A stretch of DNA of 64,000 bases, from the NCBI GenBank assembly GCA_977017575.1, contig CDRNVI010000154.1:1-64000 (forward strand). Reading direction: 5' to 3'. The notes below the pieces were generated by a model that saw nothing but the letters and a program-made list of their open reading frames with translations, was not told the origin of the DNA and did not search any database. The stretch's first letter is position 1. Each line of letters opens with the position of its first letter. This DNA comes from Paramoeba atlantica (taxonomy: Eukaryota > Protista > Discosea). Shown in pieces: positions 1 through 64,000 of this stretch. The translations under genes and the position numbers were made by a program.

Positions 1-401
1 GATTGAAAGCAAAACTTTGTGCCAATGGGAGTTCATGGAAATCAAATTCAGTCAATGATGTCTATTCCTCAATTGTAAGAGGATCCACTCTGAAAATCCT
101 CCTTGCTCTTGCAGCCCAATATAGTGCACAAGTTCAAGCTGGTGATATCTCAACTGCATATTGTTATGCCAAGATGAACCCAACTGGACCTAAGATGTAT
201 ATTCAACAAGCACCTGGTTTCAAAAGTAAAGACAAACCTCACTAGCTCTGAAAACTTGAAATGAATCTGTATGAATGGCCCCCTGCTAGAAGAAATTGGT
301 ATTTTTGTCTTCAAGATGATCTGCTCAAGATGGGTTTCAAACAAAGTCCAGCTGATCCCTGTTTGGGAAGAACCAAATCATTGGATGTTGGGAACAATTG
401 T
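1..401 (+). pseudogene. Ty1/copia family D reverse transcriptase, N-terminal half (relic)
   Basis: Reads LKAKLCANG...GDISTAY...QQAPGF...NLYE...GFKQSPADPCL, then after a frameshift EEPNHWMLGTIV, cut by the Copia-A LTR just before the expected DD. Confidence 0.8.
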
Positions 402-929
402 TGTTAGAATATCAGTATTCTTGGTTTGAAGAATGTTTGACTTAATGGAGAACATCATTTGTGAATTCTATGATCACGAGTTGTGCTATCCTGAAGCGAC
501 TCATCTTCCTCTTTCGAATGGTGCTAGTTCCATCTGAATCTGATAACTACACACCGAGATATTGATCAATCATTGAATTGTGCCTTCAAGAATACCTTTG
601 CTCTATTTCAGACCCAATTTGATTGCATAGTTTATTCTCCATATTCTGATCTTTCAGCCCATGAATTTATTTGTGCTGACGTCATCTGTTGTTCCCTTCC
701 TTAAACTTGTTGTGTCTTTGTGTCTCTTATGTGTGCTTTTATTTGTGTGTGTTTCTCTGTTTTTGCACTTGGTGTCACATTGACAAATGTGTGCTTGAAA
801 CCTGTTTGTAAATAAATGTGTGAGAGACTTTGTTTTTTTTCATGTTCCTGGCTCTCACCATAGAATGAAGTTTGCACCTTTCTTTTCTTTTCTCAGCAAT
901 CTTCTTCCACCAAACCCTGCCACTTGACA
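402..929 (+). repeat. 5' LTR of Copia-A copy 1
   Basis: TGTTAG...TTGACA termini; repeated at 6944-7381, 44962-45487 and 52389-52914. Confidence 0.95.
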
Positions 930-953
930 GATTAAGAGTCTAGGCTCTCTGCC
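930..953 (+). promoter_or_regulatory. Primer-binding site complementary to the D/anticodon arm of tRNA-Lys(CUU)
   Basis: GATTAAGAGTCTAGGCTCTCTGCC abuts the LTR; its reverse complement contains AGAGC-CTAGA-CTCTTAA-TC. There is no TGG (CCA-complement) start. Confidence 0.8.
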
Positions 954-1284
954 TGATCTTGTCATCAGTAGAACTTCAGTGTTTTACACCTTTCTTTGTT
1001 TTATTTTTTGTTTTATTTTTGTTTTATTTTCTATTTTTCTGTTTTTCATTTTTTGTTTTTTTGTTTTCACTCATTCACACCCATTCTCTCATTCATTCAA
1101 CAACTTCACTTGATTTCCTTTTTATTGCTCTTGCTCTCTCATTCCTTTTGCCTGTTTTTCTGTTTGTTTTAATCATGTGTTTTCACAATTCTGTGTGGTT
1201 TTCTCAGTTTTTCTCACTCATTTCCTCCTGTTGCTGTTTCTTGCCTTTCTCTCTCGCTCTCTTACATTTGTCACATCCTCAACT

Positions 1285-4200
1285 ATGGAAGATGATTACA
1301 GAGTAGTAGATTGGCCAGAGTTTGAACCAAAGAACAAGACATGGAAGGGTGCACTTGAGATTAATGAACTCAAAGGTGAATCCACCATTGAATTCATGCT
1401 CTGGCAAAAAGAGATGCTCATTCGACTTAGCATCCAAAATCTCATTCATCATCTATTCCTCAACAAAGTTCCTACAGGTGAACCTGTTCTAATCAAGTTT
1501 GAGGAGGAGATGGAGGAGGTTACAGAAAAATGGAAGAAGCTGAGAAGAAAAGAATCTTGGCAGAAAGAAAGGAGTTGGAGGCAAGACACAAAGAGAAATT
1601 GGAGTACAAGCAGCAAATCAACCAAAGACATTTTGATGACTGTATGGACAATCAAATGAATCTTACAAACTTACTGAATAAGGCTTGTGTTGGTCAAGCG
1701 AAGGGGTATCTTAGTGATTTGAAGAGAAGAACATCAAAACTTATTTGGGACACATTGATTTTAAATCTGAGTACCATGATTGTTCACAATGTAAAGGAAG
1801 CAAAAAGTAAGTTAGAGGATTGTTGTATCAGAGAAAATGAGATGATCTCTAGTTTTGAGTTGAGACTGAAGGAGTTATTTCTTCACGTTGAAGTGTTAAA
1901 AGGGAAACCAATACCAATGAACAAGAAATTGAGTTACATTTGAGATTCCATGCTGCAACAACGTTGGGAAGCCTTTTGAGGATTGCTTAGAGTGGGAGAG
2001 TGAACTGTAGAATCTGCTTTCTTGGAATTAAAACAAATTGAAGGTAGTTGCTCAAGTGCCAATAAGAAGAAAGAAGCCTTGAAGATGAAGGAGAACACTG
2101 CTGCCTATGTTGCTTTTTGGAAGAAGAATAACCCTGCTGCCAATCCTAATCAACAAGGAAATGTTGCCCCTCCTCACCAAGAAAGACAAGGAAATGGCCC
2201 TCCTTGTTGTAGTTCTCTAATTCCTTCTCCTCAAACATGCAACCAGTTTTGAAATTACCTTGGATGGGAAGATCCTCCCACCCCTCTGGCTAAAGCCTAT
2301 TTTCGTTGTGGTGCCACCAGTCACATTGTGAAAGGTTGCAACACAAACCCAGTGAACCAAAATGCTGTGGGACAACAAGCCAAGGCGAATTTCAATGCTT
2401 TTGTTCAAAAGATCAATGCTTGGAAGATGAAAATGAATAAAATCAATATTCCTATTTACTCCTGTTGTGTTTCTGCTCTCATTTCTTCTTCTCAATCTTC
2501 GATTCAATCTGCTTTTGTTGCAAAACAATCAAATGGAGCAACTGCTCTTGTTGATTCAGCTTGTTCAAACACAATTGTGAATGATCCAAATTTCACAACA
2601 AGAAATGCTTCACCCACAATGACCATAAGCATCAAGCAAGCAAATGGTGATCTGATTCCTGTTACAATGCAAGGTGACTTGGCAATTCATCCTGATTTGC
2701 TGCCTCTTCAAGATATCTCTGTAGTCCCCAATTGTGAAATGAATCTTCTCTCTGTGGCTCACATGTGTGAAACTTGGGATGCTTCTGTTGTTTTGAATTC
2801 TGACCAAATTCGTGTGATGAAAAAGAAGATCAATTTGAGCGATTCCCAGATGATTTTAAGTGGTCCACAGAACAATGGCTTGTATTATTTGGCTTTACCC
2901 AGTCGAACCAACTATCAACAATCTTATATTGCTGAAGAAGTAACTCACCCAAAAAATGAAACCCCTGAGGATGCTTCTTCATCTCAACCTCTCTGCAAGA
3001 AAAGAATCTGTAGAACCCTCTGTCCTACCTGTGAGAAAGAATGGAAATATTGGCATAATAAATTGTGTCATTTTTCTGGTTTGAAAAGGACTATTAATGC
3101 TTGTGTGGTTGACAGTTTGCCCCTGTAATATCACAGATTGAGAATGGATCAAAATGTTTGTACTGCTTGTGAGTTGGCCAAAGTGAAAAAGAAGAGTCAT
3201 ACCCCTGGTACAAGAACAAAATGAAAACTCAGTGAAATGTTACACATTGACAACCATGAGAAAAATATACTTTCTTATTGGAAGAACAAATACTCTCTCT
3301 CAGTTGTTGAAGACTACTCCAAGATGGATTTATCTGAATTCCTCAAGAAAAAGAGTGATGCTGGTGAAGTGCTGATCAACCTGATTGCAAAGCTTCAAAG
3401 ACAATTGGATGTGAAGGTCAAAATCATTCAATGTGATGGTGCTCAAGAATTTGTTGGTCCTACAATGAAAATTGGACAATATTGTGCTGAGAAAGGAATT
3501 CATATCAGATTTTCTAGTAGAGATGATTCTGCTGAAAATGGTGTTGCTGAATGTGCAAATGAGACTTGATGGAACACTGCTCAAGCAATTCGAATCCACA
3601 CTGGATTGCCTGAACAATTTTGGGATTATGTTGAAAAACTTGCAAGTGTTGTGAGCTCCTACATTGTGAAAGAAGGTGAAGAGATTTCCCCCTTCCAGAA
3701 ACTGTATGGTTGCAAACCCAATATTGAGTTGATCCGCCCTTTTGGTTGCCATGCTTTTGCGCACATTTCCTGAAAGAACAGAACCAAACTGATGCATAAA
3801 GCGTGCCCTGTGATCTATCTTGGCCCTTCAGAAAAAATTAATGGTTATATTTTGTATGACCCTGTAAAGAAAACTATTTTTGAAAGTTCAAGTGTGGTAT
3901 TTGATGAATATGTTTTTGGTGTTTTGAACCTGTTGAAGTGTATTGATAGAGGGAATATCCCACACTATTTTGACACTTATTTGAATGAAAAATTCATTGA
4001 TTTTTCGAAATTATCAGACCGTGATGACATTCTAAGTATGAACACAAATCATGTGGATTGTGTACATGAGAATCCTGATGATTCTGCTGAAATTGTAATT
4101 GATGATGATTACCCTGTTGATGTTGAAAGGGAGAATGGAATAGGCCATTCCACTCCTGCTCCTGTAAACTTACATTCAAAACATACTGCTTTGAATGAGA

Positions 4201-6925
4201 AAACCCACAGTACAGATGTGTACAGTGATGATGATAATGATGAGATGGTGCTTCTCAGTATGCCTCCTTCTGATTTTACTCAGAGTGATGGTTCTTACAC
4301 ATCTACATCTTCCTCTTGTTCCTCTTCTAGTTCCTCTTCTTCTCCAATTGTTAATCCTGCTCAAGCTGCTGCAGCCCCTGATTCTGAAATTCTCCCTCAA
4401 ATGACAGAATTAGATATGAAGGATGAAGAAAGTGAAGGAACTGAAAATGATTCTGCTGACAAAAATGAACCTGAATTGCCAATTGACCTCGATAATTATG
4501 AAATGTTTGATTACCCATCAGATGATCATGATCCTAACTCTTATGACCCTGCAGACCAATCTGCATCTCCTTACTCTTCCTCTACATACAACTCTGAAAC
4601 TGATCCTGAAGTTGATTTCAATCTTGTTACTCAATCTCAACCTGATGATGAAATTAACATCTCTGAACCAAATGAATCTGATGATGCAGCCAAAGAAGTA
4701 AGACACTCTGCTCGCTTCCAAGACCCTGACTACCAACATAGCGCCATTGGAAAAGCGTTCAGTGCCCTGAAAATACCTTGGAATATGTTTGGTAAACCTG
4801 ACTGTGGTTACAAAGATCTTGATTTCCTTGACTATGCCTTCCATGCTGACCAAGTTGTTAATGACAAAGTTTTTTTTTTTAAGGTTCAGACACCAGGTGC
4901 CATTTATTAGAGTTAAAAAACCATCTCTGGGATGGAAAAGAGGGGGGAAAAAAGGGGGGGGAGAGGAAAGATAAATTAAGAGTTAGATCCAAAGATCTCT
5001 TCAGCATGGGATGCATTGGAGTTTCTTTACCAACTTTAGTTCTCACTAAGGGGTCTGCATTTGATTGTTTGCCTTCTAAAACCAGGGAGTGAATTCGGTT
5101 TGGAGGTTTCTATGAAGTTAATTACATTCCTTCGAAAATCTTTCTTGATAAAGCTCCTCACCAGATTGCTCTCTTGGGACTGATGGAACCATCCTTGGAT
5201 ATCTTTAGTAATTATTACAGGGAAAATTAGAGCATTCTCAAGAGCAGTTTGGGTTGGAAACAAAACATGGGGGGTTGTCACTGTGTTTCCTTGGAATTTC
5301 CTTATGTTAATGACAAAGTTACCCCTTGATCCTACAAGCAAGCCACTCATTCAAATGAAAAAAAAGAATAGAAACAAGCCTGCAAAAGAAAATATAATGC
5401 TCATATTGAAAATAAAACTTGGGAATTGGTGCCACCTCCTCTGAAGTTCCCCAAGGATGGAAAAAAACACATTATTATGCAAGGCCTGTGGCAATTTCGA
5501 ATTAAGACTGAAAATGGTGTAATATCCAAGTTCAAAGCTTGATTTTGTGCTAATGGTTCTTGTGTAAAATATAGTCTTGCGAAAGATCCCAATTTCGACC
5601 AAAAAGATAATTATGCTGGAACTGCAACCACTGAATCTCTCAATTTGACATTTGCTATTGCTGCTATGTTTGACCTTGATGTGAATTCTGGAGATGTCCC
5701 AAGTGCCTATATCCAAGCTGACATTCCTGATGGCGATATTGTTTATTATGTCACTCAACCCAAAGGTTTTGAAGATCCTGAATATTCTGAATATCTCTGT
5801 CAATTGAACAAAGCTCTCTATGATGTGCCAATTGCTGGACAATGTTGGAATCTGACTTTTCGAAAATTTCTTATTGAAGAGCTGCAATTCTATTGTCTGA
5901 CTGCTGATCCCAATCTCTACATTTGTGTTGAACCTGACAGAAACTTCTGTTTATTTCCAACTGTTGTTGATGATAATTTGGATGTTTGTACTTGTCCAAA
6001 GCTTTGTGAAGAGATTTACTCCAAACTGATTGAAAGATTCAAGTGGAAGCCCAGCGGAAAATGCTCCTGGTTCCTTGGTTGTGGTGTGAAACAAAATCAC
6101 AAAGAAATTTCTCTCAATCAGCATGCCTTCCTCAACAATTTATTGGAGAGTTTTGACTGCCACAAAATAAGAAAGAGTGATACTCCTGCCATGAGTAAAG
6201 TTCTGCCTATGCCTAAGCCTAATGAACCCCCTACTGATTTTTCCTATGCAAGTCTTGTTGGTTCTCTAATTTGGTTGATGAAAACTCATCCTGATATTTC
6301 ATATGCTGTTTCCCAATGCTCTCACTTCTTGAATACCCACACTGAAGATTATGACAAAGCTGCTCTGCAAATTCTAGGTTATCTTGCCAAATATTCTGAT
6401 TATGAATTGATATTTCCTAAATCCAAATCTGAGACTAAAGAACTTGTGATTTCTGCCCAAGCTGACTCAAGCCATCAAGATGTTACAGAAAACAGATCCT
6501 CATTTTACGGTTTTGCTATTTTTGCAAATGGTTCCCCCATTTCCTGGTGTTCCAAGAAATCTCCTCAAGTTTGTTGGTCCAGTTGTGAATCTGAATACCA
6601 TGCCCTTGCTGAAGCATCCCGTGAATTGAAATTTGTTGATAACATTCTCTCTGAGTTGTGCATCCTGTACAAAAGACCTTTCTTGCTCCAATCTGATTCT
6701 GAACCTGCAATGGCTATTGCAAAGATTCCCCATGTAAACCAAAGAACTAAGCAAATTGAAGCCTTTGATCATTACACAAGAAAAGCATTGCAAGATGGCT
6801 TGATTGAATTGGATTATGTGCCCACTAAAGATAACCTTGCCGATATTTTTACAAAACCCCTTGGACTCAATGTGTTTACACCTCACCGGAATAATCTTAT
6901 TCATCCCCGTTGCTCTGCGAATTAA
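1285..6925 (+). pseudogene. Copia-A gag-pol (stops, frameshifts, LINE insertion)
   Basis: Zinc knuckle (Y/C)FRCGATSHIVKGC, protease LVDSAC, integrase WHNKLCH...CTAC, CDGAQEF, ENGVAE; RT GDVPSAY, TVVDD; RNase H SSCESEY, ADIFTK. Confidence 0.93.
4872..5304 (-). mobile_element. 5'-truncated LINE family 1 insertion (3' end) in Copia-A pol
   Basis: Matches 23620-24048 in reverse with a poly(T); 16-bp TSD TGTTAATGACAAAGTT at 4856-4871 and 5305-5320; the empty site is seen in Copia-A copy 2 near 48000-48016. Confidence 0.95.
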
Positions 6926-6931
6926 CTTCAT

Positions 6932-6943
6932 GATGAAAGGGAG
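6932..6943 (+). promoter_or_regulatory. Polypurine tract of Copia-A copy 1
   Basis: GATGAAAGGGAG immediately before the 3' LTR TG. Confidence 0.85.
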
Positions 6944-7381
6944 TGTTAGAATATCAGTATTCTTGGTTTGAAGAATGTTTGACTTAATGGAGAACATCAT
7001 TTGTGAATTCTATGATCACGAGTTGTGCTATCCTGAAGCGACTCATCTTCTTCTTTCGAATGGTGCTAGTTCCATCTGAATCTGACAACTACACACCGAG
7101 ATATTGATCAATCATTGAATTGTACCTTCAAGAATACCTTTGCCCTATTTCAGACCCAATTTGATTGCATAGTTTATTCTCCATATTCTGATCTTTCAGC
7201 TTGTGAATTTATTTGTGCTGACATCATCTGTTGTTCCCTTCCTTAAACTTGTTATGTCTTTGTGTCTCTTATGTGTGCTTTTATTTGTGTGTGTTTCTCT
7301 GCTTTTGCACTTGGTGTTACATTAACAAATGTGTGCTTGAAACCTGTTCGTAAATAAACACATGAGAGACTTTGTTTTTTT
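6944..7381 (+). repeat. 3' LTR of Copia-A copy 1, lacking its last ~90 bp
   Basis: Matches 402-~840, then joins the Copia-D sequence abruptly. Confidence 0.92.
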
Positions 7382-8305
7382 ATTGAGCAAAAAGTTGTGG
7401 CCCACCTCCAAAAACACTTCAAAATAAAATACTTCAGAGATATTGATTGGTTGATTGGAATGGGAATTCAACAACTGTTGAACCATGAGATTCACATTGA
7501 GCAACACAATTATATTCAATCAATTTTGGACAAATATGAACATTTGATTGAACAAAAAGTTAGCACACTTGGTGAACCTGGAACCCACATTCAACCTGGC
7601 CCTAAAGACTATGAATTTGCTTTGCCAATTTGTTCAATTTTAGGAAGTTTGATCTATACTTGCAACACCTGTATTGATTTAACTTATGCAGTCAGCTATG
7701 CTTGCAAGTACCAATCATGTCCATCCCTTGAACTTGAACATATTCTTTGCTGGATTTTATTGTACCTCAAATTTGCTCCCCACCTTGAAATAAAATACAC
7801 TCAATTGCTTGGTTGGAAACAAGGTGAACCACTTCAACTCATTGAATACTGTGACACAAGCTTTGCTGACTTGCATGATTGCAAATGCTCCTATGGTTAT
7901 TTCATTCTTCTGAATGGTTGTTTGATCTTCTGGGTTGCAAAAGTCATGAAGACTGTCCTCTTTTCAACTGCTAAAGCTGAATACTTTGCACTCACTGAAG
8001 TAAAAAAAGAAATACTTAGAGTAAAGAATGTCCTCAAAACTGTTGGACTCAAAGTCAAAACACCAGTTTCAGTCTATTGTGACAATCTTTCAGTGATTCA
8101 CCTCACCAACAATCCAATGATAAAAACAAAAATTCAACACATCAACATCAAATTCCATTGGATTTGTGAACATATTGAGAATGAAACTATAATTGTATAC
8201 CACACCCCCACAGAAGAGCAAGCTACAAACCTTTTTACAAAAGCTTTGCTCAGACCCACACATCAGAAACACATTTTAAAACTTCTTCACTCAATCCCAC
8301 TTTAG
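7382..8305 (+). pseudogene. Ty1/copia family D RT C-half and RNase H
   Basis: IDWLIGM, ILGSLIY, IDLTYAVS, YCDTSFA, STAKAEY, YCDNLS, QATNLFTKAL; continues the RT fragment at 1-401. Confidence 0.85.
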
Positions 8306-8313
8306 AAGTCTTA

Positions 8314-8560
8314 GAATGAAAGGGAGTGCTAAATATTATATTTGGTGATCTATTTTTAGTGCTTCAAACATCATCCCCACTTTTCAGTGAACCAATTGTT
8401 TTTCTTGAACTATTTAATTTTGTAACTTTTCTTTTCTTGTTCTTGAGAATAAAGCATTTCTTCTTTTCTTAATTCATTTTTCCTTTTCCTCTTTTTCTTT
8501 CTTTGTGAGTACTTTTGAAGTCTTGTCTTCAACCATTCCCACATTTTCCAACAACAGCTA
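8314..8560 (+). repeat. Copia-D polypurine tract and start of 3' LTR (end uncertain)
   Basis: GAATGAAAGGGAG then TGCTAAA, closely resembling the family A PPT/LTR junction. Confidence 0.55.
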
Positions 8561-8896
8561 GTTCCTCCATTGTTTGAGTTATCCTGTGAATTTTATACTT
8601 CAAAAAGCTTAATTGAAGCATATGACTTAGAGGAAATTTGATTTGTTCTTTCAAGACTCACCATCATGAACTTGCTAGTATTTCCAAGGAAGGTATAGGA
8701 TAGAGGGACTTCTTTAAGAGGAACAAAGTTAAATTGTACACCATCTCTGGTAGCTTGTATTCTAATCTTAACTCCTTTAGAGTTACAAGTGTTGATCAAG
8801 TATATTTTTGTTTGCATCAATTTGCTAACATTACTTAAATATCTTTTTGTAAAATTTCAAATAAACAATCTAAACAAGCAGGATGATTGATTTGGC

Positions 8897-9208
8897 AAGT
8901 AGGACATTTATTAAGTGATAATCTAACCCAAAGCTACTAATTTTTTAAGGTTAAAAATAATAAAGATAGAATTTTACCTCTTTAAGTTCAAATGATCCAA
9001 AGACCTTTAATTCACTCAAACTCCTTCTTAAAGAATTTATTTTCTGCTTTTTAGCAGACAGAGCAGAGAATAATCTGTTCTGTTTTTCACATTCAAGTGA
9101 GTAAGAAGAGAAAATAATATTTTTAATATTTTTCTCTTTGGGATTTGAACCTGCAACCCTAAATTGAAGCAATAGCTATTTTATCAACTAAGCCATCATG
9201 CCACAATT
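8897..9208 (-). mobile_element. SINE-B (tRNA-like head, poly(A) tail)
   Basis: Reverse match to 11037-11360. Confidence 0.85.
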
Positions 9209-9258
9209 CAAGTTGGTTCCTTCTCCTCAATTGTCTTCCAACACTACTCTCTTCTTTA

Positions 9259-9871
9259 GTTTTTTCTTTTTAACACTGGACTTTATTAGGTGATAGCCTA
9301 ATCCAAAGCCACTAATTTTTTAAGGTTAAAAATAATGAGGATAGAGTTTCACCTCTTTAGATTCAAATGATTCAAAGACCTTTAATTCACTTAAACTCCT
9401 TCTCAGGGAATTTATTCTCTGCTTTTTAGTAGACAGGGCAGAGAATAACCTGTTTCATTTTTCATATTTTTAATATTTTCCTCTTTGGGATTTAAACCTG
9501 CAACTCTAAATTGAAGCAATAGCTGTTTTATCAACTAAACCATCATTTTTTTCTTTTTAACACTAGACTTTATTAGGTGATGGCCTAACCCAAAGCCACT
9601 AATTTTTTAAGATTAAAAATAATGAGGATAGAGTTTCATTCTTTATTTAATTCACTTAAACTCCTTCTTAAAGAATTTATTCTCTGCTTTTTAGCAGACA
9701 GGGCAGAAAATAACCTGTTTTGTTTTTCACATTCAAGTGAGCAAGAAGAGAAAATAATATTTTTAATATTTTCCTTTTTGGGATTTGAACCTGCAACCCT
9801 AAATTGAAGCAATAGCTGTTTTACCAACTAAGCTATTATGCTACAATTAATTAAGCTATCATACCACAATT
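9259..9871 (-). mobile_element. Two tandem SINE-B copies (9259-9545, 9546-9848) plus a head fragment
   Basis: Reverse matches to 11037-11360, each starting with a T-rich tail. Confidence 0.85.
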
Positions 9872-11036
9872 AAGTAGAGCATCTCACTACTATATCAAAA
9901 GAGCCTTGCTGGGGTTCAAACAGAGACTTGAACTTGGATAGTACTAATTCCCAACCATTCCTTGATGTGAACAATAAAACAAACTAAGTTAATGGAAATT
10001 TGGGAAAAAACAAAACAATACAATTTTAAATTATTTGTACAACTTTCTTCAAGTTGTATCTTAGAAGAGAATTTGAATCAGCAAAAAGATTCTAGATCCA
10101 CTTCACACCCTTGGCTTTGAAAGGGATCCTAATTTTAAGTTTTCACAATTTTGCATTCTTGTTATTCCTTCAAATAAAGGATTCACCACATTTGATTTTT
10201 AAGAAAATACAAATTTTAAAAATAAAATTCAGGTTCATTTTTTTTAGTAGCAATTTAGTGTTTAAAGGTATTATAAACAACTTTTTGATGATTGTTAAGG
10301 TGGTAATTTTATGTTTTTTTTTTCAAATATCAAATGTACAAACCCAGCACCTATAATTCAAAATCCATTTTCATTTTTCAAAAACTGTGTTTTCAAATGT
10401 AACCCAACTTGGTTAATTCAAAACTTGGTGTATTTTTCCATCTTAAATAAAAAAGAAGAGAAAGCCCAATATCTTTTTTGTTATGATAAAGAACTGTCCC
10501 ACAAGCAATTAAGAGCTAAAATTCTTCAATTAAGCAAAAATCTTTGTTGAAAGAGTTTTTGAGAAGGAGTTCAGATCTGAACAAAGTGAGCAGTTTGTTT
10601 AGACATTTGAGAGAAAAACAAAAAACAAAAAGAAAAAAAAAAAAAAAAAACAAAAAACTTGAACTAAATCATTTTGGTTATATTTTTCAAATAAAAAAAA
10701 GAAAAAAAGTAATCTGAAAAGACTCTAAGATGAAAATTGCTAATTTTTTTGCTTTTCAAATTTTTGATTCTTTTTTCAAAATGTTTGTTAGATTCAATCT
10801 CAAAAGAAAAAAATAAATTCAATCACAAAAAAAGAAAAGAAAGAGATTAAAAATGGAATTATTGCTCTATCAACCAATTTTCCATGATTCTTTGTTTTCT
10901 TTTTTATGAACATTATCACCAAAAAACCCTTTTCCTCTTTCAATGTTATTGTTTCCTCTTATTTGTTTTTCAAAGCCATCTAAGGATAGTTATTCTACTC
11001 TCTCTCTCCTCTTTCACTTTTATTATTTGATTGTTT

Positions 11037-11360
11037 AATTGTGGCATGATGGTTTAGTTGGTAAAACAGCTATTACTTCAATTTAGGGTTGCAGGTTCAA
11101 ATCTCAAAGAGGAAAATATTAAAAATATTATTTTTTCTTCCTGTTCACTTGAATATGAAAAATGGAACAGGTTATTCTTTGCTCTGTCTGCTAAAAAGCA
11201 GAGAATAAATTCTCTGAGAAGGAGTTTAAGTGAATTAAAGGTTTTTGAACTATTTAAACCTAAAGAAGTAAAACTCTATCTTCATTATTTTTAACCTTAA
11301 AAAATTAGTGGCTTTAGGTTAGACCATCACCTAATAAAATCCAGTGTTAAAAAGAAAAAA
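11037..11360 (+). mobile_element. SINE-B, full length (~325 bp)
   Basis: Box A TGGTTTAGTTGG, box B GGTTCAAATC, A-rich tail; 16-bp TSD TATTATTTGATTGTTT at 11021-11036 and 11361-11376. Confidence 0.9.
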
Positions 11361-12037
11361 TATTATTTGATTGTTTTTGTTTTTCAATTGTATGAGAACT
11401 TGTAAAAACAAATAAGAGTTTAGTGTTTTGGAAAGTGCTTGAAAAGAAGGTTGTGTTTCCATTTAATCATCTTGTTTTTCTTTTTCTTTCTTTTTTTTCT
11501 TTTGTTTTTCTTCCCTTTTTTTCTTTCTTTTGTTTTTCTTCCCTTTTTTTCTCCTTTTTTTTCCTTTTTTTTTTTTCTTTTTTTTTTTTTTATTATTCTT
11601 ATCATTTTTAAAAATATCTTTTTTGAATCCACACAATACAGGTTTCTAAAATTGTTGGAAAAATGAATTGAAAAAAAACAAGTGGTTCACATGGACTCTT
11701 AAAATCAATGGATTATTTAAAACTGGAACAACTACATTATTTTAATAAGAAAACCAGGAAAAAGCACTATTGTTGTTGAAAACTTATTTTGAAACTAAAT
11801 CAACAACAGTTTTTCTCTAAATCTATCACCAACTTTGGAGCAGGAAGTTTTGGAAATGGAATTTCAAACTCTAGTGATTTCAAGTGTATTGGCTTTCCAG
11901 ACAAAGGATCTAAGACTTATTGAAATATTATTACATTATTTGGATTTTTTAATAATCCATATTATTTATCATCATATTCACAAACTGTACTTGTTTCAAA
12001 TTATTAGATTTCTCAAGGTTTTGCAAGTCTATTTATT

Positions 12038-12463
12038 TTTTTTTTTTTTTTTTTTTGAGGCAGACTTTATTCAATTAGTAGTTCTTAATCTAAGTCATTT
12101 GAATTACATTAAATTATGTTTGTTTTTAACCTCTAACAAGAGGTGAAGTTTTAAACTTCAGCTTAGTTCAGTCGGTCTTTATGCTGAACTTTAGAACTTC
12201 TGCAAGTTCAGGCTGGAGGATGTACATCAGAAGGGAGAATAATCCAAAGCTCCTTCCAAGGGAATTTATTCTCAACTTTTTAGCAGACAGGGCTGAGATG
12301 TAACCTGTTTCGATTTTCACACTTCTTCAAGAGCTCCTCACTCCAATCAAATCACTCTACAACACCAGAAAAATTTTCTATAATATCGAAAAACTGGGAT
12401 TTAAACTCACCCCCCCGAGGTTGGACATAGTCGAATTTACAACTAAACTACAGGCACCAACCC
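12038..12463 (-). mobile_element. SINE-A, full length (~425 bp)
   Basis: Poly(T)...GGCACCAACCC; 18-bp TSD TTTGCAAGTCTATTTATT at 12020-12037 and 12464-12481. Confidence 0.93.
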
Positions 12464-12726
12464 TTTGCAAGTCTATTTATTAAATTTTAAGAAATTATAA
12501 TCCTTCAAAATACACAAAAAAAAAATGAATTAACTTTTTTGAATTGCTTTCTTCACAACTCACTTTCCAATGAGCAAATAATAAATGAGTTCTTAAATTA
12601 GTCTTTTTGAAATGTTAGACTTGAACTTTTCAAAAGTTCAAGTTCAGTGTTTCAAAAGGTTTATCTTTTTTAATCCATGTTCTTTCATCTTCATTACAAA
12701 GAATCTTCAAAGAGATAAACCACTTT

Positions 12727-12881
12727 AAAGAGCTTGTGGGGCTTAGAAATCTTATAAGTTTCCTATTAAGATATCCGATAAGATTCTCAATCTGATTTTT
12801 CATCTTATTAGACTCTAATAAGAATCTTATTGAAATCTTATTAAGTAATCTTAAAAGATTTTTAAGCCCCACAAGCTCTTT
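12727..12881. mobile_element. ~150-bp MITE-like palindromic insertion
   Basis: 27-bp inverted repeats AAAGAGCTTGTGGGGCTTA(G/A)AAATCTT; absent from the duplicate unit (empty site CACTTTAAAG/TTTGTAAT at ~13311-13328). Confidence 0.8.
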
Positions 12882-55144: not shown

Positions 55145-56608
55145 TGTAAATGAGGCTCACAAAACCACCTCTGAAAAAACGAAGTCAAGAACTCAATCCG
55201 AATCAAAAAGCATGAACACATCCAAATCATCACATGTTGAAGAAACAGAGAGAAGATCATGGGAGAGGTTTGGAACAAACAAAACTTGACTTAAACTTAA
55301 GTCTCTTCCATCCATGAGGATTGAACCAGTTCTGTGTTTCTCAACAGGTAAAGCAGAGCCATTTGCTTGGGTTATTGATTCACCAGGGCCAGCAGCATTA
55401 TGTTGGATCATGTCAGGGTTGTTTGTGAGGGTAGGAAAAGCACTAGAATCAACAATCATGTGGCGAAAACCATCAGCAGTGTGAAGAGCAACAGAGTCAT
55501 CAGTGACATCCAAAAAACAAAAACCATCTGTGAGTTCATCATAGTGCTCATCAGTTTGTTGCTTATCAAGAAGAAGATCTTGGACAAGCTTGAGGAACTC
55601 CTCAGTAGAAGGTTTGGTGTAGAAGGCCATTTTGCAGATGCCAGTTATTGCAAATTGTGTGAGAAATGCTTCACCAACAGAGGTCTGGGGCTTTCCTTGC
55701 TTCTTTCTTCGACATTCATCCTTCCAGTGACCAGTCACCCCACACCAGTGGCAATGACCTTGATGAACAGTTGAACCATCAGGATGTTGATCACCAGGTT
55801 TGAATTTCTTTCCAGTTCTCTGATGTTTCTCCTCCTTTGCTTCAACCAACAAACCAACATGTGGTGGGAATCCAAAACTGGATTCTTTGCCATATTTAGA
55901 CAGAACTTTTTCTTCAAAGTGTGCCAAACTATTGACCAAATCCTCGAAAGATAAATCTTTCTGATATTTGAGTGTCTTTATGGGTTGGAACTCAGGACCA
56001 AGACCTCAAAGAAGAAGAGCCATCATACAGTGTTCTGAAACAGATTCATCATTCTCAGTAGATTCTATGGTGAGGGTCATACTTTGGGATACATAATCAT
56101 TGACAATTTTATTCTCCTTCTTTTTCAAAGTCATCAACTCATTTGTGAGATCCAGCAAAGATGCCATTGTTTTTTTGTTTTTTTTTTGGAAGTAGACTTT
56201 ATTCAATTAGTAGTTCTTAATCTAAACCATTTGAATTACATTAAATTATGTTTGTTTTTAACCTCTAACAAGAGGTGAAGTTTTAAACTTCAGCTCAGTT
56301 TAGTCAGTCTTTATGCTGAACTTTAGAACTTCTGCAAGTTCAGGCTGGAGAATGCACATCAGAAGGGAAAATAATCCAAAGCTCCTTCCAAGGGAATTTA
56401 TCTTCAACTTTTTAGCAGACAAGGCTGAGATGTAACCTGTTCTGATTTTCACACTTCTTCAAAAGCTCCTCACTCCAATCAAATCACTCTACAGCACCAG
56501 AAAAATTTTCTATAATATTGAAAAACTGGGATTTGAACTCACCCCCTGGGGTTGGACATAGTTGAATTTACGACTCATTACAGAATTTTTGTATGGTGCC
56601 AACGTGTC
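55145..56608 (-). pseudogene. Ty1/copia family C gag-protease fragment (split by SINE-A)
   Basis: TLAPYKNSVMASLLDLTNELMTLK...GLGPEFQPI; CHWCGVTGHWKDEC; IVDSSA; VLFVPNLSHDLLSVS. Confidence 0.85.
56170..56575 (-). mobile_element. SINE-A, slightly 5'-truncated
   Basis: Matches consensus up to TTTACGACT; short CATT duplication. Confidence 0.9.
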
Positions 56609-56684
56609 AATATTTGATTGGTTAAAAAATAAATTGAACTTTTTTTCGTTTTGTTCTCCATTTTTGATTCTAGCAACGAAAGGG

Positions 56685-57795
56685 AATGAGAAACTGCCAA
56701 AATGAACACCAAAAAAACCTCCAATCTCATTAGATGAAATCATGGAGATTGATTTCATTACTGAGAAAATTCAACAAACGAAAAAGAGGAAACAAAAAAC
56801 CATTGAGAAGCAAAAAAAACGCCGAAAAAGAGGAGTGGAAAAAACACAGCAGCCGCTGCTGATGGAGACCATTCCTGTTGATGAAGAGAGTTTCAATTTG
56901 AATGAGACAAAGTGATGGATGAACTCCATGATTCTTCCTGAATTTGAAAAGCGACTTGATTTTGCCTTGAAGAAACGAATTCGATCTTTTCGGATTCAGC
57001 TACCATTGCCAAAACAAATTTTCTGCTATGTCCAACCCCAGAGGGGTGAGTTCAAATCCCAGTTTTTCAATATTATGGAAAATTTTTCTGGTGCTGTAGA
57101 GTGATTTGATTGGAGTGAGGAGCTCTTGAAGAAGTGTGAAAATCGGAACAGGTTATATCTCAGCCCTGTCTGCTAAAAAGTTGAGGATAAATTCCCTTGG
57201 AAGGAGCTTTGGATTATTCTCCCTTCTGATGTGCATCCTCCAGCCTGAACTTGCAGAAGTTCTAAAGTTCAGCATAAAGACTGACTGAACTAAACTGAAG
57301 TTTAAAACTTCACCTCTCGTTAGAGGTTAAAAACAAACATAATTTAATGTAATTCAAATGGCTTAGATTAAGAACTACTAATTGAATAAAGTCTGCCTCA
57401 AAAAGAAAAAAAAAACAAAACAAATTTTCTGTAAGATTTTTTGTGAACCATTGAAAAAATTTGAAAAAGTGAAGTTTCAAGTCAATGAATCAGGACAATG
57501 TGCTCGAATCTGTTCTCAAGACAATTTAAAAAAACTGGATTCTTGCTTTTTGAACCGTTCTGAATGGCAAACCAAAAAGATTCTCTTGCAAAGTTCTCGC
57601 GGCAATATTTTTTTAAATGAAGAGGTAAATATCGTTCTTCATCATTGGATTGAATTTGATGTTATTCAAACTGATGAAAATTGAATAATCAAGTGTGAAT
57701 CTGAGTTGATTTTAAAATTTACGAAAAAAAAAAGTCAATTTGAATGCTGTGGAATCATTGAAGTTACAAATGCATCTGGCTTTCATTGCACTTAA
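56685..57795 (+). pseudogene. ORF-X: unknown protein of ~235 aa after SINE removal, basic N-terminus, TGA interruptions
   Basis: One frame ATG56685...TAA57795 once the SINE and one TSD copy are removed; internal TGA at 56703, 56913, 57682. Confidence 0.6.
57026..57415 (+). mobile_element. SINE-A, 5'-truncated
   Basis: 16-bp TSD CAAAACAAATTTTCTG at 57010-57025 and 57416-57431. Confidence 0.93.
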
Positions 57796-58056
57796 AGGAA
57801 ATTATTTGTTGAATTATTTTGAAACAAAATTAAATTTATTTTACAAAAAAATCTTGAAAAAAATGAAACTATTTTTTCCATTGTTAGTAAAATGTTGAAA
57901 AAAAAAGGGGAAAAAATTTAATTAGTAAATGAAAAAACTAACTTTTTCAGTTCGTCAAGTTCTTGCTGCATCTACCTTTGATGTAAAAGAATTTGATTCA
58001 TCTGAATTTTGAAAAAAATGAATTAATAAAAAATATTAATTGAAAAAGAGAAATGT

Positions 58057-60470
58057 TCAAATCCAAAAAAAAAATACTTGAGTTTGTGAGGATGTGTTAT
58101 TGCCACACACTGTTGATAGTTGGGGATTTTGAAGTGGTTGTGGGTTTGCCACCACTGTTGATTGATACATTGGTTGTTGAGCCAATCCATAAATTTGTGA
58201 ATTGCCATTTTGTTGAAATCGGATTTGGGGTGAAGGATTGAAATTTTGTTGGAATTGTTGGGGTGATTGAATAGAAAGTATTTGATAGGAAGTTTGGTTT
58301 TGTGGAACTGGTTGGAAATTGTAATTTGGTTGGGTTTGAGAAGATTGAGGAAGTGGGAGTTGAATTATTGTTTGTGGAGTTGAAAATGTTTCATAAGAAG
58401 TTTGTTGGGTTGTCATAGTTGGTTTTGTTGACTTTGTCGTTTTGTTGGTGAGTGGAAACACTGAACTGTTTTGTGTGTGTTTTCTGATTGTGAATAATTG
58501 TAAATTATTTGTTGCCCTTTTTTGTACAAAAGAGGTTTTGTTCTTTGGATCCATTTGTGGGCAAAAGAGTATAAACTTTCTTTTGTTCTTTTTGGCTTTT
58601 GGAACACATTTGATAAAAGACATTGAACCAAGCTTGTTCTTTCTTTGTTCTTTGTTCTTGTTCTCTGTTCTTGTCTCTATCTCCATACTATTCTGTAGAG
58701 GACTCAACTAAGTTGGTTCTTGTCGAGGAAAAAATGGGTTGGATTGAATTTGAATGACTTGAGGTATTGGTGGTGGTTGATTTTGAATAAAAAGATAGGG
58801 GTTTGTTGCTCCTTCTTTGAATGGAATGGGGGTGGAATTTGATTGAAAAGACTGAAGTGGCAGTTGTTGAATTATAGATTTGTTTCGATCTATTGGATCA
58901 GAGGAAGTGGAATTAGAGTGGAATTGTTGAATATGGTCAAGTGTTGGTACATTTGAAATCATTGGCTCAAAAGTTAGTGGATTGGTGTTTAATTGTGATT
59001 GTTTCATTTTTGTTGAAGAAGAGTGGAGTATTAATTGACTGGAGACAGGTTTTTCAGGTTGTAAGGATTGGTTAGTTTCAGTTGGTGAAGGAGATTGTTG
59101 AAGTTCTGGTGATTGGGGAAGTGGGGAACCCTGTGGAGATGAGGTCACTGGTAATGAGTGATCAGTTTCCTTATTCGTGTTGGCTTTCTTTTGCTTTTTT
59201 TCATTTGGGAGGGAATCGAAAATGTAATCTTCTGAATGGTTGTGTCGTGTGGGACGCAGGGAGGGTTTTGGAGTTTGTTTCTTATTATTTTGAGGATGTG
59301 CAGTCTGAGGTCGCTTGGGGATCATCAAGGGAAGAGGAGAGGTTTCTCGGGCTGATTTTTCCTTCCTCTTGTGCTTTGGCATTTCCTTTCCTTGCTGAAA
59401 CTCCTTTGAGGCTTTTTGGTTGGTTGATTTTTGCCAAGGGAGATGACAGTCAGTGTTCAAGGTCTTAATGAAGAGGTAATCAGAACTTGGAAAAAGAGAA
59501 TCCACTCTGTTCAATTGAATCTTTTCTTTAATCAACAGCATTGAGTGAACGAGTTCAAAAACATCCCTTGGATTGAGTAGTTTGGAGGGGTTCAACTTCT
59601 CTAAAATCGCTTGGTTGGTTGCGGGGAAATCGTCTTCTCGAATAAAAATGAAAACTTCATTCAGCAATGAATCAAGGAGTTCTTTCTTACTCAGAACCAG
59701 CAAATAATCCTTTAGAAGTAAAAGTGTGCACGGAGTTAGTGATGTTGATGAATCTCATGGTTCACCACAAGAATTACTTCTAACGAAAAGGTCCCCTTGA
59801 TTTGGAAAGGGTAAGCAGAGTTGGAGCAAGCAGGAATATCCCTGTTTCCCCTGACTACAGAGGGTTTCAACTTGACTGACAAGTGGTTTCTTTTCGTCGA
59901 AGATAAGAGGCCTCAAAAGGGGAGGGAAAGTTTTGTTGCTTTGCAAATTCTGTAATTTTCCAGGATCCAAATACCAAAAGGAATCTTCTTCAAAGACCTC
60001 TTCTCAAATCCAGAACTGAGGGTAAGTTGAAGACTCACCAATTCCTGAGCTGATTTTCCAGCAAACTGATGAAAAAAAAGTAACTTCCTTTTTTGTTTGT
60101 TCACTAAGGTTGAAATATTTTTTTTTCTCGTGGTCAATTTGAGGTGAGTTTGTGTCCACTTTTATTGTGGTTTCAAAGGTGGGGGAGACTCATGCCAACC
60201 ACGATGTTCGCTTCAAAAAATCCACATAGGAACCACCACAATAATTTGAGTATCTGACGTAATCTGGGCAAAATGCTGTGTTGCAATCGAAATAATTGAA
60301 CCCCTTGGAAATATCAGAGACTCCAACGAGATAATTGGTGACGAGTTTGGTGTTTTTTTCAATTTTCGATTTTGTAATTAAACTGAAAAACTAACCAGAG
60401 CAACAATCAAGAAACCCCAATAATGAACTGAACCATTTTGAATCTCAGAATTGCAATATAAACACTTCAT
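58057..60470 (-). pseudogene. ORF-Y: ~770-aa unknown protein, Cys-rich N-terminus, Q/P/S/T-rich C-terminus, probable intron 60395-60304
   Basis: MKCLYC...HYWGFLIVAL, GTTAGT...TTCCAAG 92-nt intron, then one frame broken only by TGA at 60192, 60006, 59757 and TAG at 58710. Confidence 0.6.
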
Positions 60471-60528
60471 TGTGGAAAGGAAAAGAAAATAGAAGTGGAA
60501 AACTGAGGGAAGAAAGGGTCGAAAGATC

Positions 60529-61073
60529 TTTTTCACAAAAAAACTTTTTTTTTTGTGGGGAAGCAAAAATACTCTTTTTTCATTTCAACACTTCAAAAAG
60601 TTCAATTTGAGGAACTTTTTGAATTTTTTTATTGTTGAAAAATTTTAAAAAGGAGTGGTGGCTAAATATTTCAAATGAATTAAACTCTCTCTGAAAAGGA
60701 TTTTTTAGTTTTATTGAAGGTTTAAAACTTTTTCCACAAAAACTTTTTTTTTTGTGGGGAAGTAAAAATACTCTTTTTTCATTTCAATACCTCAAAAAGT
60801 TCAATTTAAGGAACTTTTTGAATTTTTTTATTGTTGAAAAATTTTAGAAAGAAGTGGTGGCTAAATATTTCAAATAAATTAAATTCCCTCTGAAAAGGAT
60901 TTTTTAGTTTTATTGAAGGTTTAAAACTTTTTCTACAAAAACTTTTTTTTTTGTAGGGAAGCAAAAATACTCTTTTTTTATTTCAACACTTCAAAAAGTT
61001 CAATTTGAAGAACTTTTTGAATTTTTTTGTTGTTGAAAAATTTTAGAAAGGAGTGGTGGCTAAATATCTCAAA
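60529..61073. repeat. ~200-bp tandem repeat x2.7 with internal hairpins
   Basis: Units start at about 60534, 60735, 60934; units carry TTCAAAAAGTTC-N8-GAACTTTTTGAA (one mismatch in unit 2) and CACAAAAA...TTTTTGTG-type stems. Confidence 0.9.
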
Positions 61074-61126
61074 CACAATTTGTGGGGCAGGCAGGAAAGG
61101 CAAAAAACTTGAGGAGTTTGAGAAAA

Positions 61127-62397
61127 ATGGGCCGCTTTCAAAACGCTCGTGAGATTTTACAAGAATTGAACATTTCTTGGGAAAACTTATCAAAGCAAAT
61201 CCAATTGAAAATTTGAGATTTAAAAATTGAGGGAAGTGAAGGGAACCATGGTGTTCTTGAGTTTGAAGGAAGTGGGGTTCGTTTTCGAGGCCATCCTCTT
61301 GCACCTGATCACATGATTGCATGTTGAATGCATCCTACTTGGATCATTACTTTCAGGAGATTCCCTCCGAAGCTCAAAGAAAGGCCTTCATCTCCTTTGA
61401 TTTTGCTTTTTTAACAAAAGGATTGAAAATCCTTCGGTTCGATGATGAGTCAGAAGGGGGGTTAAATAATGAATGGGATCGGAAAGGTTGGCTTCGAATC
61501 TATTCAGAATTGAATGACAGACCCAAAATTTTGGAACAACTTTCAGATCAATCAGGTGGGTTTTTAAAGCACTTGGATTTATTGGTTGAGGAAAACCTTT
61601 TAAATGTTGTTTCTGGGGATTTATACATTTCATCTCAGAGTGGTCATAATGACATGTTTTTTTGCTCCCAGGTAGCTTCAGAAGAGGAGGTTTACAAAAT
61701 GTCAATTCTTCAATCTTTGCTTCTCTCTTTGAACCTCCTCCTGCCAAAATGTAAGCAGAATGCTCAGGGGTGGAACCTCATAGCTCTTGGGCTTCACAAA
61801 ATTCAAAACTCTTTAATGAAATGGGCTCAAACTCAACATCTAACGGACAACATGAAGAAAATTCTTTCATCCCTTTTAATTGCATATGAGATAAGAGAGT
61901 ATTGCTTGATGAAGTGGATAACTGGATTAAAAAAGAATTCAAACTTTTTTGTGGAACAGATTGGGATGTGCAAGAAATTTCAAACAGCTTGGAAGGAAAC
62001 AGGAAAAGATATGAGAGTTCAACTTCCAATGAAATGTACTCAACAAATTTGGATTGGAGGAGGCTGTGGAACCCTCCTCCACAAAGATGCTTCAAACTTC
62101 GGTTTGTCATTTTGCCAATATTTGGGTTTCAATTGGAGGGAAAGTGATTGTGGTGTTGGTCTCCCCGAACTTCGAATCCTTTGAAAAAATTCACCAGAAT
62201 CTGCAATGGCCATTCGTGCTTGTCATTACTTTCACATGAGTTTGCCACTTGATTTAGGGTTGAAAATGATGGGTGCGTCTTTTGTTAATCTTAAAAAAAA
62301 AATCAAATCCTCTGAAAAACTAAATAAAAGGAAAGCAACACACAAACCAAAGCCCTCAAAAAAATTGGTTGAAGTGAAATTGATAAAAAACTTATAA
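61127..62397 (+). pseudogene. TET/JBP-family 2OG-Fe(II) dioxygenase (decayed)
   Basis: HKDASN at 62080-62097, GVGLPEL, HMS at 62233-62241, KMMGASF at 62263-62283, basic tail, TAA 62395-62397; TGA at 61214, 61325, 62182 and one frameshift near 61320-61415. Confidence 0.75.
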
Positions 62398-62400
62398 ATT

Positions 62401-64000
62401 TTATTTCTCATCACCATCTTCTTTCAAAGAAATTTCAGTTTTGAGATCATACATTCATGTGAGGAAAAGGTCTTCCTGAGCAGCTCAAATCAATTTTGGG
62501 TCTGTCACCACTTCACTTCTTCAATTTAAATTCATTTGAGTTGCTCGAATTTCTTGTGGGATATTCAAAGAGGTTTGATATTGATTTGCTAAAGAATGGC
62601 TGTATCAAAAACAAAGTCCAGTTGTGAGGACTTTAGCGTTCAGATTTGCAGAACCTCGTTGGCTACTCTGATAGAAGTGCATATGATCCAAGTAGTGGAC
62701 CTGCTCCTCAGCTTCTGCTGCCCAAGGTCACAAATTCCCAAACTGACAATATGTATCCACTGCGTGAGCTTCCAGAATGTGGAAATAAATTCACCAGGTG
62801 GAACCCATCTCCCCTCCCCAATCCGTGAAGCTTTCCTTCCAAGAACCAATTTTTTTTTCAAAATTAATGGTGACTGCTTCACAATTTGACCCTTTTGGGG
62901 GGTCACTTGTCAGCATTTGAAAACATTCTCAAAAGGTAACCTACAATGATGTTGTGGATGGTCGATTTGGATTGCAATAAAAGATTCTTTCGACATTCTC
63001 CAATACTTGCCACATTTGAGTGCCTGTGTATCGCCCCAATTTCCAATTTCCATCATCACCAACTCGGAATCGAAAAGGAATTTTACATTTAGAAAACACA
63101 AAGACCAGCAACTTCTTTTTTTTTTTTTGAGGCAGACTTTATTCAATTAGTAGTTCTTAATCTAAGCCATTTGAATTACATTAAATTATGTTTGTTTTTA
63201 ACCTCTAACGAGAGGTGAAGTTTTAAACTTCAGCTTAGTTCAGTCGGTCTTTATGCTGAACTTTAGAACTTCTGCAAGTTCAGGCTGGAGGATGCACATC
63301 AGAAGGGAGAATAATCCAAAGCTCCTTCCAAGGGAATTTATCCTCAACTTTTTAGCAGACAGGGCTGAGATGTAACCTGTTCCGATTTTCACACTTCTTC
63401 AAGAGCTCCTCACTCCAATCAAATCACTCTACAGCACCAGAAAAATTTTTCCATAATATCGAAAAACTGGGATTTGAACTCGCCCCCCCGGGGTTGGACA
63501 TAGTCGAATTTACGACTAAACTACGGGCGCCAACCCAAAAAAAGACCAGCAACTTCAATGATTTGGTCTTCAATGAGTGATTCTTCTCAAATCGTTCTTT
63601 TGTGGAGCTTTTCTCATATTCTTCCTCCAGATGAGATTTCAACAAAAGGAAAGAGGAAGGTGAAGAAGAAGAAGATGAAGAGGAAGAGGAAGAGGAAGAG
63701 GAAGAAGATGAAGATGAGGAGGGTAAGGAAGATGAAGGTGAGTTCAATGATGAGGATGAACATGAAGAGAAATCTTGAAAGTCAGCCCACCACTTTGCTA
63801 TTAAATCAATTCTCAAAATTAAATGAGCTGAGTTCTTCGGTATCTTTTACTTACAAAAGTTTGATTTCCATTCGTCCTGCAATGACTCACTGTTCAATCC
63901 AACCATTTTTCCTCTTCTCAAAATTGTGTATTCTCGTTAGAATATCAATAGAAAAGCAAGAGATTAAGTTCATCATGGCATTTCTGTTGAGACCTCCCCC
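62401..64000 (-). pseudogene. RAG1/Transib/Chapaev-like DDE transposase, C-terminal part (runs off the window)
   Basis: CKIPFRFRVGDDGNWKLGRYTG...IYFHILEAHAVDTYCQFGNL*PWAAEAEEQVH...FYQSSQRG; 7 TGA and 1 TAG in 62401-63115; SINE insertion; Ser-rich insert at ~63650-63770. Confidence 0.75.
63116..63536 (-). mobile_element. SINE-A (young, CpG-rich)
   Basis: 16-bp TSD AAAGACCAGCAACTTC at 63100-63115 and 63541-63556. Confidence 0.95.

Follow-up and report, generated by a model that had tools for sequence, protein, structure and literature searches.

A dead copy of a probable, highly divergent TET/JBP-type dioxygenase gene in a DNA transposon of Paramoeba atlantica

The window analysed here, the first 64,000 nucleotides of contig CDRNVI010000154.1 of Paramoeba atlantica, had been predicted from its letters to conceal the catalytic core of a TET/JBP enzyme behind a stop codon, which raises the question of whether such a gene is present, whether it still functions, and what it is doing in this DNA. 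The main open reading frame (61321-62184, + strand) closes at TGA 62182-62184, and the same frame runs onward (KNSPESAMAIRACHYFHMS...) to TAA 62395-62397. The single split frame of the original prediction is exact, and the continuation contains the residues that it quoted. Chance can be excluded for this interrupted frame, because relatives of just 30-41% identity align across the stop in one frame (tblastn; P0010 versus 61570-62298, E 8e-50).

We found that the N-termini of distant relatives are homologous to an upstream ORF starting at ATG 61127, and that the alignment is gapless across the junction of the two ORFs (hhalign 91.7%, E 8e-7). The gene start is ATG 61127, as the original prediction had it, the ancestral ORF had about 399 codons, and the stop of the family corresponds to TAA 62321-62323. 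In the copies L003 and L007 one additional base makes the frame continuous. We also considered an 80-nt GT..AG intron (61277-61356) joining the upstream and main ORFs, and rejected it: the N-termini of relatives are continuous there with the right spacing, the extra base of L003 and L007 restores the frame, and the 54 bp absent from L005 were lost in a random deletion and do not correspond to the intron. The gene and its catalytic motifs are laid out as follows.

61127-62323, + strand: probable TET/JBP-fold Fe(II)/2OG dioxygenase pseudogene, delimited by the eight-copy DNA alignment, paralogues P0001-P0003, N-terminal homology and fold
62080-62088, + strand: HKD of the motif HKDASN, the HxD iron ligands
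62095-62097, + strand: Asn at Asp+3, at the position of TET2 Asn1387 and NgTet1 Asp234
62233-62235, + strand: distal His, the second His of HYFH
62263-62265, + strand: Lys at +10 from the distal His
62281-62283, + strand: Phe at Lys+6
62287-62289, + strand: Asn at +8

All three codons of the Fe(II) triad (HxD...H) are intact in the window and lie on opposite sides of the TGA. The predicted spacings of 51 residues from His to His, 10 from His to Lys and 6 from Lys to Phe are correct.

Comparison with other copies overturned the idea that one stop alone hides the gene. Aligned with seven of these, the window copy has five disabling lesions, together with the loss of an Arg codon that is kept in relatives.

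61214-61216, + strand: in-frame TGA, private, from TGG; the column at 61216 reads AGGGGGGG, and about 97% of the contig depth reads G
61325-61327, + strand: in-frame TGA, common to most copies; L003 has CAA, and CGA is the likely ancestral codon
after about 61332, + strand: loss of one base, missing in six of the eight sampled copies
62182-62184, + strand: TGA of the original finding, private, derived from TGG (Trp)
62293, + strand: extra A in an A-run, private, shifting the frame of the last 11 codons; possibly a homopolymer sequencing error
62065-62067, + strand: TGT (Cys), five residues ahead of the HxD His; columns TCCCTCTC / GAAAGAGA

The stop that defined the original finding had been read as a former Arg codon. 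The eight-copy column at 62184 is AGGGGGGG, with G in the seven other sampled copies; both L001 copies, L002 and L003 have TGG under the standard code at 62182-62184; and contigs from three DNA runs have G in every one. Because the other copies and the contigs have G, the stop is a private TGG>TGA change and not a former CGA, and the relatives in the 15-sequence protein alignment A2 conserve Trp at this position. Concerning the single-base loss after about 61332, the spacing to the LDxYF motif agrees with that of relatives only when the missing base is present.

At His-5 distant relatives have Arg, with the consensus xGRGTxxHxD. The other copies have CAT at 62065-62067, or TAT in P0037, and none has CGT. 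An ancestral CGT lost via CpG transitions on either strand would explain all three states. In NgTet1, Arg224 binds 2OG and stacks on 5mC (PMC7854593), and the family Arg, at the same spacing before the first His, may be its equivalent.

With three in-frame TGAs, two frameshifts and a conserved Arg codon lost, the window copy is dead. Assembly error may account for some of the private changes but for none of the shared lesions. Measured against the family frame, the window copy lacks the uninterrupted frame of a functional gene, and the seven other copies fare no better, each having disabling lesions in the ancestral frame. A search for RNA evidence of the gene, which covered one candidate run, came up empty.

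We give hardly any credence to the opposite reading, in which the gene is functional: its TGA would be read as Trp or selenocysteine or passed by read-through, or else would be an assembly error, and a complete catalytic domain would be made starting from ATG 61321. It could appeal to the window's A at 62184, found in no contig, to the position of the extra A at 62293 within a homopolymer, and to the model of P0001, a protein that likewise lacks the N-terminal 70 residues and yet keeps the whole fold. However, recoding is unnecessary when other copies have TGG at 62182-62184, and the missing A proves nothing, since contigs drop rare variants. Moreover, the private changes share the C>T/G>A spectrum of every other copy, Cys stands in place of Arg at His-5, the upstream TGA and frameshift are common to copies from another assembly, and ATG 61321 itself resembles a CpG-decay product of ACG.

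A genetic code with TGA as Trp was likewise rejected. P0002 and P0005 have W at many TGAs as a result of the gene caller's alternative code on those contigs, and other copies have a genuine TGG at 62182. The contigs in question, L002 and L007 of ENA ERZ24900291, were gene-called with TGA as Trp, and the predicted proteins P0002 and P0005 consequently cross real stops, a trap when ancestral residues are inferred.

The death of the window copy is part of a wider pattern of decay. Over the window segment 61100-62420 and the copies L001-L003 and L005-L007 (eight copies), about 97% of the differences are transitions, and C>T/G>A changes exceed the reverse about 9-fold, 40% of C/G sites being affected in at least one copy versus 4.4% of A/T sites. 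CpG is saturated, with 39 of 42 sites changed, and non-CpG cytosines are changed at 24-45%. The contigs from the DNA runs have the same spectrum. This excess suggests that repeats are subject to a RIP-like process or to deamination of their methylated cytosines, and the same process probably gave both private TGG>TGA stops and, in all sampled copies, removed the conserved CGT (Arg) codon.

What did the gene encode when it was alive? A word-indexed search found nothing beyond close paralogues at 79-95% identity, spread over many contigs of a single ENA assembly, and an exhaustive HMMER search added JGI metagenome proteins at 34-44% identity. The ORF adjoining one of these relatives, P0012, on its metagenome contig has nothing in common with the element that carries the window gene. 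Invariant in A2 are just the His and Asp of HxD, one Tyr and one Gly. Over 90% of family members retain the distal His (HMS), and the K/R position and the F/Y six residues on are also conserved. Asp+3 is N or D, and the +8 residue is mostly Asn, with His only in P0019. The family pattern can be written HxDxx[N/D] ... [K/R]-x5-[F/Y]-x-N, with the distal His at +51 and K/R at +10.

These relatives decide how the Lys of the window is to be understood. In NgTet1 (R289), TET2 (R1896) and CcTet (R385) an Arg ten residues past the distal His holds the distal 2OG carboxylate. The Lys of the window had been taken for a G>A lesion of AGA, an Arg codon. Every close copy turned out to have Lys at this 2OG site; of 13 family members covering it, 7 have K, 5 have R and 1 has D. 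In the sequences compared, Lys is a conserved K/R alternative within the family and not damage; the charge is kept, and K is not the canonical residue. The Asn that replaces the His expected two residues after the aromatic is real, as had been noted, and family-wide.

Fold was tested on the intact paralogue P0001, which is 93% identical to the window copy. Its AF2 model, built on A2, has a pLDDT of 81.7 and a pTM of 0.84, and the predicted fold is a double-stranded beta-helix. CcTet, NgTet1 and CMD1 account for every one of the top 21 Foldseek matches in the PDB (E 8e-10 to 5e-6, the best being CcTet at 8e-10). Realignment of the Foldseek list with VIA-align gave:

CcTet: Z 19.7, 276 residues, rmsd 4.4 A
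NgTet1: Z 19.4, 224 residues, rmsd 3.3 A
TET2: Z 16.4, 242 residues, rmsd 3.8 A
CMD1: Z 15.7, 255 residues, rmsd 4.0 A
FTO / ALKBH3, the next: Z 12.5, 172-191 residues, rmsd 3.2-3.6 A

A second scan, made without Foldseek on 48,161 representative chains, put the four solved TET/JBP representatives at ranks 1-4 in the same order (Z 19.4, 19.3, 16.2 and 15.2), followed by FTO at 12.2. In the ESM Atlas, a search by shape led to PF12851 clusters (TM 0.60), and one by language-model features found PF12851 on 25 of the 30 nearest clusters. The outcome named in advance as fatal to the prediction, a fold other than a double-stranded beta-helix or best matches in a family not acting on nucleic acids, is the reverse of what the model gives.

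At the level of sequence, PF12851 (Tet_JBP) is matched by none of 15 family members at E up to 1, and the window pieces and paralogues are also without a Pfam match. Searches of PHROGs, and of PDB sequences with a single sequence, returned nothing. The sole PDB match to a whole-length profile was adiponectin, which we rejected as spurious. With a profile of the core only (A4, 93 positions) against 177,635 PDB sequences, the best match is NgTet1, below threshold (E 0.27). In that alignment the family HkD..N pairs with HKDNLD, the family Lys with the Arg of GWRI, and the HMS His with the His ten residues ahead of that Arg. This weak profile alignment reproduces the proposed mapping onto NgTet1 H229, H279 and R289 (and D231); the His numbers were derived from the aligned sequence together with D234 and R289 in PMC7854593. 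Equivalence to individual residues of the solved TETs is thus suggested by spacing and by one weak alignment. No sequence method attains significance for TET/JBP membership, whereas the predicted structure is clear.

An HxD...H arrangement with a basic residue at +10 is generic among 2OG dioxygenases, and prolyl 4-hydroxylases typically have Lys there. The gene might therefore belong to another family, such as AlkB/FTO-like repair enzymes or RNA demethylases, or prolyl/lysyl hydroxylases, with its TET-like spacing reflecting only the generic HxD...H...R/K pattern. AlkB, FTO and PHD chains do reach Z 11-12.5, in line with that reading, as is the silence of Pfam Tet_JBP for every member. We nevertheless judge it quite improbable: the four solved TET/JBP enzymes rank first, ahead by 3-7 Z units and 30-90 aligned residues; the best PDB sequence match, weak as it is (E 0.27), is again NgTet1; the TET-specific N/D at Asp+3 and F/Y at +6 are conserved; and the Pfam-annotated embedding and Atlas neighbours are Tet_JBP clusters. 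The original prediction of a TET/JBP core thus stands in its fold and motif geometry, and falls in the Arg assigned to the stop, in the Lys read as a lesion and in the single stop.

The solved enzymes share the pattern HxDxx[N/D/G] ... R-x5-[F/Y]-x-[H/R] (PMC7854593, PMC11040006), with which the family of the Paramoeba element compares as follows.

TET2: Asp+3 N1387, 2OG Arg R1896, +6 Y1902, +8 H1904 (PMC7854593, PMC11040006)
NgTet1: Asp+3 D234, 2OG Arg R289, +6 F295, +8 H297 (PMC7854593, PMC11040006)
CcTet: Asp+3 G331, 2OG Arg R385, +6 F391, +8 R393 (PMC7854593, PMC11040006)
CMD1: Asp+3 D350, Arg R410, +6 F416, +8 R418 (PMC7854593, PMC11040006)
Paramoeba element family: Asp+3 N/D, 2OG site K/R, +6 F/Y, +8 mostly N

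NgTet1 (PDB 4lt5, 5cg8) is like the modelled protein a compact TET core, lacking a Cys-rich domain or large insert; alignment of the two over 224-226 residues gives Z 19.3-19.4 and an rmsd of 3.3 A. HKD of the one falls on HKD of the other, spacing is 51/10/6 in the window and 50/10/6 in NgTet1, and at Asp+3 NgTet1 has Asp where the element family has either Asn or Asp. However, identity is only 11-12%, NgTet1 has R289 and H297 where the window subfamily has Lys and Asn, and the NgTet1 gene belongs to its host. The best structural match is CcTet of Coprinopsis cinerea (PDB 7vpn, 7w5p, 8jkk; Z 19.4-19.7), a TET that acts on both 5mC and 6mA and comes from a basidiomycete whose TET/JBP genes have expanded; its 263-276 aligned residues include the N-terminal helices. 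CcTet differs in its Gly331 at Asp+3, by which 6mA is admitted (PMC11040006), and in its Arg393 at +8, while the family has Asn/Asp at Asp+3. CMD1 of Chlamydomonas (PDB 7cy4-7cy8) also has the TET fold (Z 15-16) and demonstrates that the distal basic residue of TET/JBP enzymes can be re-purposed, but it takes vitamin C and not 2OG, with its Arg pointing away from the site, and we see no sign of that here.

The predicted match of HxDxxN to the Asn of mammalian TETs is borne out by position, the window Asn lying at Asp+3 like TET2 Asn1387. N/D at this place in TET2, NgTet1 and CMD1 hydrogen-bonds cytosine N4 and excludes 6mA (PMC11040006). Because of these contacts in conventional TETs, the N/D of the family would favour 5mC as its substrate. 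The +8 position varies among solved TETs, being Arg in CcTet and CMD1 (PMC11040006, PMC7854593).

The surroundings of the gene indicate how it came to be present in so many copies.

56576 to 64000, strand not assigned: multi-copy transposon of about 7.5 kb, extending past the window end, defined by blastn to L001-L003, inverted repeat and alignment of ends
about 56576-56625: left terminal inverted repeat
57026-57423, 58403-58710 and 63113-63541: nested insertions in the element
58057-59703, - strand: second ORF of the element, Ser/Pro/Gln-rich and of low complexity, split by an insertion; intact at 683 aa in L001 (6581-8632, -)
60528-61073, strand not assigned: tandem repeats of about 200 bp upstream of the dioxygenase gene, conserved in all copies
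62401 to 64000, - strand: decayed 3' part of a transposase gene, convergent with the dioxygenase gene; its core lies beyond the window end

Blastn located matching blocks on other contigs (92-98% identity); they share their ends with the window element and have inverted termini of about 50 bp, and the order of parts is identical in L001 (two copies), L002, L003 and L005-L007. The 683-aa ORF has no match in Pfam, and the tandem repeats between it and the dioxygenase gene may be the promoter region of the element. None of the transposase-zone ORFs has a Pfam match, and a search of PDB sequences with them was also empty. The best-preserved one (L003 5900-6877, -) has embedding look-alikes in Transposase_21 (EnSpm) and the RAG1 RNase-H (0.92-0.94), and the transposase looks like a member of the CACTA/EnSpm-Transib/RAG1 (CMCT) group. 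A dioxygenase gene and a transposase gene, the latter classed by its look-alikes, are hence found together within a repeat unit bounded by terminal inverted repeats, as in a TET+ transposon.

Two of the nested insertions (57026-57423 and 63113-63541) belong to one family of about 400 bp with an internal inverted structure (MITE-like), which matches L003 7286-8113 in both orientations. L001 holds two head-to-tail copies of the element (3-5212 and 5496-12792), 283 bp apart.

A host multigene family lying in repeat-rich DNA, with no transposon involved, could also be multi-copy, and the weak support for transposase identity and the lack of an established target-site duplication leave some room for it. 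This seems very improbable to us, as the gene always occupies the same position in a repeated block several kb long, which is 92-98% identical from copy to copy, has inverted repeats of about 50 bp at its ends and is found on different contigs, and as every sampled copy has disabling lesions in the ancestral frame. We consider it likely that 61127-62323 is a dead gene copy of a highly divergent TET/JBP Fe(II)/2-oxoglutarate base dioxygenase, carried as cargo by a TIR DNA transposon of about 7.5 kb.

TET/JBP genes are carried in fungi by DNA transposons of the KDZ, EnSpm, ESTA, Plavaka, hAT, Harbinger, IS3EU and Helitron types (Kojima 2025, PMC12730594), and earlier reports of TET+ transposons in Basidiomycota are cited there. 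Like these, the Paramoeba element is of the cut-and-paste kind, has a separate TET/JBP-type gene beside the transposase, and is multi-copy with many copies decayed; an EnSpm/CMCT-type carrier is among the published cases, and their proposed role is escape from methylation silencing (PMC12730594). Unlike these, its host is an amoeba, its dioxygenase is too divergent for Pfam PF12851, and the window subfamily has Lys and not Arg at the 2OG site and Asn at the position of the base-contacting His/Arg. To the TET-carrying transposons known from fungi, the element adds a TET clade that is clear in structure and invisible in sequence, in EnSpm-like transposons of a protist.

To judge from the N/D after HxD, an active master copy would oxidise 5-methylcytosine in the element's own DNA, and this oxidation would work against silencing by methylation, the part suggested for TET+ transposons in fungi. 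The C>T-causing methylation/deamination of repeats would be the very pressure that a TET cargo is expected to counter. The near-exclusive C>T decay points to cytosine methylation/deamination on repeats in this organism, and the window copy would be a mere fossil of the conflict between element and host. The protist case would extend the use of demethylation-type enzymes by transposons to another eukaryotic supergroup, and it implies that Pfam-based surveys undercount TET/JBP genes.

A bolder reading starts from the Lys/Asn-type clade, which we have seen only in the transposons of this organism and in environmental contigs. It would be a functionally distinct TET/JBP branch with a different base or co-substrate preference, engaged in an arms race with a repeat-directed, RIP-like C-to-T system that acts in all dinucleotide contexts. 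We regard this as unlikely, if somewhat less so than the alternatives weighed above.

The window as a whole is eukaryotic DNA, AT-rich (24-43% GC) and full of repeats, and it includes copia and LINE ORFs. It also contains, in a block of 26% GC, a second and much older relic of the dioxygenase family (about 10307-10545, - strand; ...CGTVLYHNKKDIGLSLLFYL...), with internal stops, in which changes of the C>T kind have turned HxD into YxN.
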